A DNA stretch of 64,000 nucleotides. Source: Pavona decussata. Lineage: Eukaryota. A model generated the notes under the pieces. That model saw only the letters and a program-made list of their open reading frames with translations. It ran no database searches and was not told where the DNA came from. The number at the start of each line of letters is the position of its first letter. Positions within the stretch are counted from its first letter, which is position 1. The translations under genes and the position numbers were made by a program. Of the stretch, positions 55,788-56,640 are shown piece by piece. The stretch spans positions 1,240,001-1,304,000 of the forward strand of contig CDRNST010000226.1 of assembly GCA_977016875.1 (NCBI GenBank), read 5' to 3'.

Positions 55788-56640
55788 GATGGTTGCATTG
55801 TACAGTGCTGGCACTGTTGAGACATTTCAGTATTGATGAACTCTGATAAAGTGAAATATTTGTGTATATTTAACATGAAATTTTAAAGTGGGCTGGTCCC
55901 ACAGTATGTACATAATTGACCAACAGATTTCTTCAAGGTACTATGAGTACCATAATTATGCCTGACATGGACATATTTTTCATATATAGAAGTATTAATC
56001 ATAGAATGCAGCTGGTCTCTGTATTTGTTTAGGCTAGAATATTTTTCCTAAAAACGGATTTCTGTTTTAGCAAAATGGTGACGTTCAATGTTTTGAGAAG
56101 TGGTGTACATTGGTATGCCTTGTGTAAAATCTAGTTGTATTTATGTTTTAAAATATTAAGAATTAGGCTGGTCCTAATGTACATATTTTGATGTGCAGAC
56201 GTTTTAAGGCACTTAAAGTGCCAAACTGGCACTTAAAAGGGCCTATTTTTCATACATTGAACCTATGAACAAAATTATACAGCAGGTTTCTGTATTCAAT
56301 TAGTTTTAAGATATTTTATGTAAAGACATGATGTTTTGTTAAATTGTTCTCCTTGGTACAAAAGGCATAAGAATTATTATTATATATAATTTTTTTCATA
56401 AGTAGAACTCAATTTACAAAGATTCATAGCTTTTTTAAATATTCACATGTACTTGCATACGGGTAAAACCCAGATGTACAAACATTTTTAGATTTGACGC
56501 CTGCTTATCAAGGAGAATAATTTTTTCAAATGTCAAAGAATATTACAAACAAAGTAATAGTCAAGCTGGTCATTGACTATATAATCCCAGTGCTGGTCAC
56601 TAAATGATAAAAAATAAAGTTGAAACTTTGAAATACATTT
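55788..56640 (+). other. EGR 3' UTR with six CUGG-loop hairpins, two Pumilio elements and a poly(A) signal
   Basis: AU-rich sequence after the stop codon. AATAAA at 56613-56618 is followed by GT-rich sequence near 56643-56658. Hairpins and TGTACATA sites are detailed in the findings. Confidence 0.75.

Follow-up and report, generated by a model that had tools for sequence, protein, structure and literature searches.

A conserved array of CNGG-loop hairpins of the Smaug recognition element class on the EGR mRNA of the coral Pavona decussata, with predicted silencing by Smaug

The window analysed here is a stretch of 64,000 nucleotides (nt) of Pavona decussata DNA (GCA_977016875.1, contig CDRNST010000226.1, positions 1,240,001 to 1,304,000 of the forward strand). 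It carries on its + strand a two-exon EGR gene with three C2H2 fingers. Among named proteins, the nearest to its product is early growth response protein 1, from Acropora digitifera (86%), Desmophyllum pertusum (94%, a fragment), Nematostella and Exaiptasia. An earlier note on this DNA had reported six hairpins with CUGG loops in the EGR 3' untranslated region (UTR) and proposed that they are sites for Smaug. We found eight CNGG-loop hairpins on the EGR mRNA, seven in the 3' UTR (HP1 to HP7) and one in the 5' UTR. Comparison among cnidarians strongly supports the view that they are selected RNA structures of the Smaug recognition element (SRE) class. The features, in window positions, are as follows.

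53896-53916, + strand: 5' UTR hairpin AGTTATTG-CUGGC-CAATAACT, perfect 8-bp stem and pentaloop, some 100 nt upstream of the start codon (ATG, 54015)
54015-55787, + strand: EGR coding region, an open reading frame with three Pfam zf-C2H2 matches
ATG 54015 to about 54225, + strand: EGR exon 1 (bounds from the alignment of the related transcript L001)
about 54226-54675, + strand: EGR intron (L001 alignment)
about 54676 to the stop TAA at 55785-55787, + strand: EGR exon 2 (L001 alignment)
55788-56637, + strand: 3' UTR, 850 nt, bounded by the ends of RNA-like contigs and conserved about as well as the coding exon of this gene
55802-55817, + strand: HP1, ACAGUG-CUGG-CACUGU, tetraloop
55888-55902, + strand: HP2, GUGGG-CUGGU-CCCAC, pentaloop, with UGUACAUA downstream at 55907-55914
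56005-56025, + strand: HP3, AAUGCAG-CUGGUCU-CUGUAUU, 7-nt loop, one G-U pair
56162-56178, + strand: HP4, AUUAGG-CUGGU-CCUAAU, pentaloop, its final base being the first of UGUACAUA (56178-56185)
56277-56295, + strand: HP5, AUACAG-CAGGUUU-CUGUAU, 7-nt loop, paralogue of HP3
56557-56580, + strand: HP6, AUAGUCAAG-CUGGU-C(A)UUGACUAU, bulged
56589-56601, + strand: HP7, AGUG-CUGGU-CACU, pentaloop, 12 nt before AAUAAA
56613-56618, + strand: AAUAAA poly(A) signal, with cleavage at 56637

The six hairpins reported before were reproduced in position, stem and loop; HP5 and the 5' UTR hairpin are additional. Loops read CUGG, CUGGU, CUGGUCU, CAGGUUU or CUGGC, and HP6 requires either a bulge or an 8-nt loop. 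Pentaloops are found in HP2, HP4, HP7 and the 5' UTR hairpin (and in HP6 if bulged), the remaining loops having 4 or 7 nt. Six of the seven CTGG copies of the UTR stand at a loop start, and the seventh (56226) lies inside the stem of another hairpin. The five sense-strand copies of GCTGGTC were confirmed at 55892, 56011, 56167, 56565 and 56592. Their chance expectation, put earlier at about 0.02 per 700 nt of one strand, agrees with the 4.3 copies expected on both strands of the whole window, where 10 were observed.

All 3' UTR hairpins are part of the mature polyadenylated EGR mRNA, because RNA-like contigs end at 56637, one of them with an A-tail. Contigs were placed over 55650-57300, beside the zinc-finger region. 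Position 56637, 20 nt past AATAAA, is the common end of contigs from three RNA-like runs (three studies), and one contig (run X1) ends there with 22 untemplated A. The depth of the RNA-like contigs is in the hundreds to thousands, with only short repeat matches beyond 56637, while a DNA run (depth 21) continues straight past this position. The earlier note had allowed for transcripts that end before the sites; the observed end lies beyond all of them. The related transcript L001 (93% protein identity) is a spliced mRNA that aligns to 53836-54218 and 54673-56640 of the window and ends 28 nt past its own AATAAA. It carries the 5' UTR hairpin at its positions 61-81, and the placement of this hairpin on the mRNA rests on that related transcript. 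The BLAST alignment to Acropora is unbroken through exon 2 and the 3' UTR and ends at 56664, the intergenic DNA beyond being unaligned.

Hairpins were counted under a strict rule (CNGG at the loop start, a loop of 4-7 nt, a stem of at least 4 bp and at most one G-U pair). Bulged HP6 falls outside this rule, and the 3' UTR count is 7 with HP6. The excess over dinucleotide shuffles, a check proposed in the earlier note, was found (6 strict hairpins in the 3' UTR vs. 0.25 ± 0.51; 0 of 2000 shuffles reached 6). The background in the rest of the window was 0.44 strict hairpins per kb (Poisson P = 3e-6 for the UTR), and only 5.7% of background CNGG copies lay inside strict-rule loops. In 441 kb of sequence from the same genome, both strands scanned, every 850-nt segment with at least four hits overlapped the EGR 3' UTR. 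The strict scan of the coding sequence gave no hairpin, in line with the earlier remark that CTGGT copies there lack such stems.

Conservation was analysed in six further scleractinian-like sources (including A. digitifera), Exaiptasia, an anemone-like contig, the octocoral Dendronephthya and the hydrozoan Hydractinia. The set includes no Nematostella locus; L010 and L057-L059 are anemone-like and unlabelled, and the metagenome loci L089-L132 (zinc-finger matches only) were left out. All ten other cnidarian EGR 3' UTRs had 2-5 strict hairpins within the first 350-880 nt past the stop, each with P ≤ 0.007 against shuffles. Over 11 UTRs, CTGG was by far the commonest 4-mer at the loop start, with 39 of its 60 occurrences in loops, and the strand count was 47 hairpins in sense vs. 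0 in antisense. The same hairpin pattern was present in further coral and anemone-like metagenome contigs. Among 26 unlabelled, probably medusozoan, contigs, 14 retained between one and three hairpins, in most cases the first tetraloop on other stems.

The covarying stems with invariant loops that the earlier note had suggested looking for in related species were both found (HP1, HP4 and the 5' UTR hairpin). HP1 was present in 11/11 taxa (N of the loop being U, A or G), with 5/7 pairs changed on both sides, 86.9% of cells paired and 0/500 shuffles reaching its score. Its stem reads ACAGUG/CACUGU in Pavona decussata, ACGGCG/CGCUGU in Acropora, AAAAGCG/CGCUUUU in the octocoral and GCCUG/CAGGC in Hydractinia. 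In HP4, also found in 11/11 taxa, both partners had changed in 3/6 pairs; 90.7% of its cells were paired (2/500 shuffles). In the 5' UTR hairpin 4/7 pairs were changed on both sides, all owing to Hydractinia, with 100% of cells paired (0/500 shuffles). The signal of all three collapsed when the 3' partners were slid. In alignments A2, A3 and A5 the loop C, G and G were fixed (C1, G3, G4), while N2 was U, A or G and the fifth base U, C or A.

The other hairpins were retained over shorter ranges or in altered form. HP2 was kept in scleractinians with altered, partly bulged stems, and HP3 in five scleractinian loci. The HP5 loop is CUGG in loci L001, L006, L004 and L007. HP6 has a perfect stem in anemones (GUCAUG-CUGGY-CAUGAC). 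At the closing pair of HP7, G-C has given way to G.A in L004, L007 and the anemones, which yields the stem CAGU/ACUG with the loop GCNGGUA or GCUGGAA, and N is A in L010. The 5' UTR hairpin was retained in all scleractinian loci, L007, the octocoral (CUGGA loop) and Exaiptasia (CGGG loop), and with a different stem in Hydractinia. The comparison indicates that the array is firmly anthozoan, with a reduced form in at least one hydrozoan, and that it has been kept for hundreds of millions of years in corals, anemones, soft corals and a hydroid.

Within the 3' UTR, about 271 nt were duplicated in tandem long ago (55888-56032 and 56162-56302), with HP2, UGUACAUA and HP3 in copy 1 and HP4, UGUACAUA and HP5 in copy 2. 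Each copy includes a G-CUGGU-C hairpin followed by UGUACAUA, then a GGYACU-NNN-AGURCC hairpin, a UAUUUUUCAUA block and finally an AURCAG-CNGGUYU-CUGUAU hairpin. When aligned, the 100-nt cores (55932-56032 and 56203-56302) agree in 68 of 102 columns, and both copies are present in all aligned scleractinian UTRs. HP3 and HP5 have a common stem; the stems of HP2 and HP4 have diverged while the loop was kept. HP1, HP6, HP7 and the 5' UTR hairpin lie outside the duplication. The earlier argument that unrelated stems around a constant loop point away from a repeat therefore holds in part: stems do differ between sites and covary, but they are not all independent, because HP2/HP4 and HP3/HP5 are duplication pairs.

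Other structures were present in the same UTR. Three more conserved small hairpins have 3-nt loops: GGUACU-AUG-AGUACC (55937-55951), GGCACU-UAA-AGUGCC (56208-56222) and GGGU-AAA-ACCC (56461-56471). An alternative hairpin, which includes the CUGG at 56226, is in competition with the one at 56208-56222. A candidate long-range helix of 9 bp joins UUCUCCUUG (56347-56355) and CAAGGAGAA (56509-56517), 153 nt apart. Both blocks are among the best conserved in the UTR, and their changes in the most distant aligned UTR, that of L007, give G-U pairs and no mismatches. Covariance models of Rfam gave no family match in 53700-56800, with chance-level hits only (E > 2).

A Pumilio-type UGUANAUA motif occurs in the window directly past HP2 (55907-55914) and again at 56178-56185, overlapping the last base of HP4. 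One or two UGUANAUA copies, neighbouring a CNGG hairpin, were present in each of 11 taxa. Directly 3' of the UAGG-CUGGY-CCUA hairpin (HP4), UGUACAUA or UGUAUAUA was found in 10/10 anthozoan taxa; in Hydractinia a UGUANAUA lies near the first hairpin. Enrichment of UGUANAUA within a single UTR was modest (P 0.005-0.2), and the Pumilio argument rests on the conserved position. AUUUA was not enriched in the UTR (3 vs. 4.2 expected). Pumilio and Smaug families both recruit CCR4-NOT. A UGUANAUA beside a CNGG hairpin recalls maternal mRNA clearance, in which the Pumilio response element (PRE) acts together with Smaug. The EGR UTR differs from the known cases in that the abutting SRE-PRE arrangement is fixed, the PRE being a candidate site. 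We know of no description of such a fixed, abutting arrangement.

The hairpins were compared with the published Smaug code. According to Chen et al. 2014 (PMC4053848), the SRE loop is CNGGN0-3 and the best predictors of Drosophila Smaug binding are CUGG, a G directly 5' of the loop and five-base loops, preferences that agree with those of Smaug homologues from yeast and human. A G directly precedes the loop in 45 of 47 EGR hairpins vs. 31 of 193 background hairpins (16%). U occupies N2 in 39/47. Pentaloops are more frequent than any other loop size, tetraloops and 7-nt loops together making up 24/47. As candidate sites, the EGR hairpins fit the published optimum in the G before the loop, the CUGG and the pentaloop.

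Genes for possible readers were located in the coral genome by a degenerate DNA pattern for WLKSLRLHKY, a motif that served as a probe only, and were then confirmed against PDB. The pattern had no exact match; with up to two mismatches it found two SAM genes, each at one mismatch. In the first (G000:C60), an exon encoding WLKNLRLHKY had Drosophila Smaug (1OXJ, E = 5e-8) as its best PDB match, followed by Vts1, and the next exon (GVTKGARNK) matched 1OXJ solely (E = 0.012); each exon was searched separately. An upstream exon was above the cut-off for Pfam Vts1 (PF25479), with a weak PHAT match. These matches indicate that the genome encodes a Smaug/SAMD4 orthologue. The second gene (G000:C115, about 603.7-607.3 kb, minus strand; L042, L050) has a Smaug-type SAM domain in two exons (WLRRLRLHKY and GARRKL), with Smaug 1OXJ again as the best PDB match (E = 6e-4). 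About 2 kb downstream, on the same strand, lies a CCHC zinc knuckle (Pfam 21.4 bits vs. a cut-off of 20.8). A protein-atlas search with this gene returned generic SAM clusters only. A search for the SAM_1 family gave no Smaug-type locus among the best 30 of 54 matches, and a Pfam PHAT search of the genome was blank, as were its controls, which makes it uninformative.

The SRE-class assignment rests on the transcript ends, the deep conservation, the compensatory changes, the invariant C, G and G with a variable N, the strand asymmetry and the agreement with the Smaug optimum. While this class of cis-element is well supported, the trans-factor and the sign of its effect are not. We consider it moderately probable that the array is read by Smaug and that EGR output is silenced. 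One 5' UTR and seven 3' UTR hairpins display CNGG at the 5' side of 4-7-nt loops, with a G in front in almost every case and G-CUGGU-C as the most frequent form. Smaug-family proteins bring in the CCR4-NOT deadenylase and translational repressors, and in this model one bound to the array would do so here; the output of EGR protein would in that case stay low or soon be switched off, with the abutting Pumilio-type UGUANAUA probably assisting repression. From the earlier claim of a multi-site Smaug target, a selected SRE-class hairpin array on a mature mRNA and an encoded Smaug orthologue were upheld; we infer that Smaug binds the hairpins, that it rather than another protein reads them, and that the effect is repression.

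Several observations weigh against the Smaug interpretation. In a global fold of the 850-nt UTR, HP2 alone forms, and it is the sole hairpin with a probability above 0.95 under every folding regime tried. When pairing was limited to 40 nt, HP1, HP2, HP3 and HP5 reached 0.62-0.95, while HP4 and HP7 stayed below 0.1. The closing pair of HP6 was not predicted, the model giving a stem with the open 8-nt loop GCUGGUCA. The global fold misses most hairpins because long-range pairing between look-alike hairpins wins, and we treated this poor support as a limit of the energy model rather than as a disproof. The old duplication accounts for part of the hairpin multiplicity. HP5 has lost its CNGG in L002 and Acropora, with the stem retained, and no hairpin was found in 12 of the 26 unlabelled, probably medusozoan, contigs. 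The whole 3' UTR is conserved (66% mean column identity), so some of the loop conservation is shared with the surroundings. In 1 kb past the stop of the amphioxus EGR locus (one species, UTR bounds unknown) there was no strict hairpin. For cnidarians, an immediate-early role of EGR has been documented only in part: the Egr motif responds to injury in Hydra (PMC8049744), which agrees with the immediate-early or wound gene assumed in the earlier note, but egr expression in Nematostella was judged not to support a role in regeneration induction (PMC12804838). The coral also has a possible second reader of the same loops.

That second reader would be a ZCCHC2/ZCCHC14-like SAM protein that recruits a TENT4-type non-canonical poly(A) polymerase, whose mixed tailing would shield the poly(A) tail against CCR4-NOT and stabilise the EGR mRNA. 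The Smaug-type SAM domain of ZCCHC14 binds CNGGN pentaloops and recruits TENT4, protecting poly(A) tails and stabilising RNA; its loops are CAGGU in SL-alpha of hepatitis B virus (HBV), CNGGN in RNA2.7 of human cytomegalovirus (HCMV) and CUGGA in stem-loop Vb of hepatitis A virus (HAV) (PMC9282228, PMC11055085). ZCCHC2 likewise has a Smaug-type SAM domain and recruits TENT4 to stabilise RNAs. The Smaug-type SAM and the downstream CCHC knuckle on one strand at G000:C115 suggest a candidate gene of ZCCHC2/14-like architecture. EGR contigs are deep in the RNA-like runs, although depth is a poor measure, and the sole EGR tail seen, in contigs only, is the one of 22 A. Known ZCCHC14 elements are single viral hairpins, while multi-site arrays are typical of Smaug targets such as nanos and Hsp83 (PMC9893680). 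The 24/47 tetraloops and 7-nt loops fit the Smaug code CNGGN0-3 and not a strict pentaloop, and a repressor motif of the Pumilio type has been kept next to a hairpin. Because of the multi-site array, the half of the loops that are not pentaloops and the conserved Pumilio-type UGUANAUA without AUUUA enrichment, Smaug is favoured, and stabilisation by a ZCCHC-like protein seems rather unlikely. Competition of Smaug and a ZCCHC-like/TENT4 complex for the hairpins, a toggle of the poly(A) tail between shortening and protection by cell state, is less likely still. A Smaug gene and a candidate ZCCHC-like gene are present in the genome, both families are documented on CNGG(N) loops and one mRNA offers many sites, but the toggle is pure inference, and literature searches found no such antagonism on a cellular mRNA. 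We hold equally little confidence in its extension to an ancestral cnidarian tail-length switch, which would predate the anthozoan/hydrozoan split and combine a contest of Smaug vs. a ZCCHC2/14-like protein with a hard-wired Pumilio site and a 5' hairpin coupled to translation. Were it true, viral CNGGN elements, in hijacking ZCCHC14, would be imitating an ancient regulatory code of cells.

The hairpins, as real RNA structures, could also be read by a factor other than a Smaug-type SAM protein, or have a structural role, for example in mRNA localisation, in UTR architecture or as a small-RNA target. Conservation of the whole UTR with its other hairpins and candidate long-range helix, the missing Rfam match and the little-studied cnidarian RNA-binding proteins leave some room for this. 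It is nevertheless improbable, given that invariant C1, G3 and G4, a free N2 and loop 3' end, a sequence-free stem and G at -1 are exactly the published Smaug/Vts1 code. A small-RNA seed site would neither tolerate N2 changes nor need covarying self-complementary flanks, and a microRNA seed site was ruled out on these grounds. An origin as palindromic protein sites on the DNA, or as a by-product of repeats or duplication, is very improbable. Palindromes can be transcription-factor sites and two hairpin pairs do derive from the 271-nt duplication, but the sense bias of 47:0, with a non-palindromic loop that is always CNGG on the mRNA strand, ruled out a DNA palindrome; moreover, G-U pairs are tolerated and conservation ends at the poly(A) site. 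A mere repeat by-product fits poorly with the loop kept in HP2 and HP4 despite stem divergence and with the four hairpins outside the duplication.

We interpret the array as a real, strongly selected new instance of a known element class, with a predicted and well-motivated mechanism. It shares with SREs (Drosophila nanos 3' UTR and Hsp83 open reading frame, targets of yeast Vts1p and of mammalian SAMD4 such as Mig6) a loop with CNGG(N0-3) on its 5' side, a stem of any sequence, several copies per mRNA, the G before the loop, the preference for CUGG and the pentaloop as the best size. The loop of the 5' UTR hairpin, CUGGC, is also that of the nanos SREs. Unlike known SREs, the array lies in a non-bilaterian host, has an EGR transcription factor as its predicted target, comprises eight sites, one of them in the 5' UTR, is conserved over Anthozoa into Hydrozoa with compensatory changes, and has a Pumilio-type motif fused to one hairpin. 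ZCCHC14/TENT4 elements (SL-alpha in the post-transcriptional regulatory element of HBV, HCMV RNA2.7, HAV stem-loop Vb) have the same loop code and a Smaug-type SAM reader, with a ZCCHC-like gene predicted in the coral; they are single viral hairpins that stabilise RNA or aid replication, in contrast to a multi-site cellular array with tetraloops and 7-nt loops. AU-rich elements of vertebrate immediate-early mRNAs limit the output of inducible transcription factors from the 3' UTR, as is predicted for the EGR array, but by a linear code, whereas the EGR array is structural and not enriched in AUUUA.

In the literature, no paper combining a Smaug recognition element with Egr1 was found, and co-mentions of SAMD4A with EGR1 and of Smaug, SRE and Egr (checked or judged by title) were unrelated. 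Cnidarian Smaug was found only as a candidate factor of maternal-to-zygotic clearance, without targets. The earlier impression that the EGR hairpin array had not been described thus agrees with these searches. Smaug-family proteins are conserved from yeast to humans; to our knowledge, well-defined natural target elements are known in few species only, and no individual Smaug site has been described as conserved over long evolutionary distances. The array is a testable first candidate Smaug target outside bilaterians and fungi, and would tie a reef-coral transcription factor associated with stress and injury to post-transcriptional silencing. It is also a natural cellular candidate for the CNGGN code, which is documented for ZCCHC14/TENT4 mainly on viral RNAs.

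Conservation of the array into chordates found no support in amphioxus EGR, the one chordate checked. This locus has a single AAGACG-CUGG-CGUCUU hairpin (L049, 6734-6749) inside the coding end, about 90 nt before the stop.

Some minor features surround the EGR gene. A near-palindrome, CGATA-CCGGT-TATTG (53626-53640), is located roughly 200 nt upstream of the related transcript's 5' end, inside a 700-nt stretch alignable to Acropora. It is identical in three other scleractinian loci and is probably a promoter element. Downstream of EGR, 56871-56914 and 57072-57103 are short pieces of a high-copy repeat; dozens of contigs from all four runs match just stretches of about 30 nt of repeat and then run into unrelated sequence. 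A RING-finger (RNF34-like) gene (L002 6702-7086; L003 21902-22352) follows next downstream of EGR both in Acropora and in a related coral contig. Window positions 57457-58000 align to the Acropora locus at the position of this gene, and the pairing of EGR with the RNF34-like gene appears conserved.

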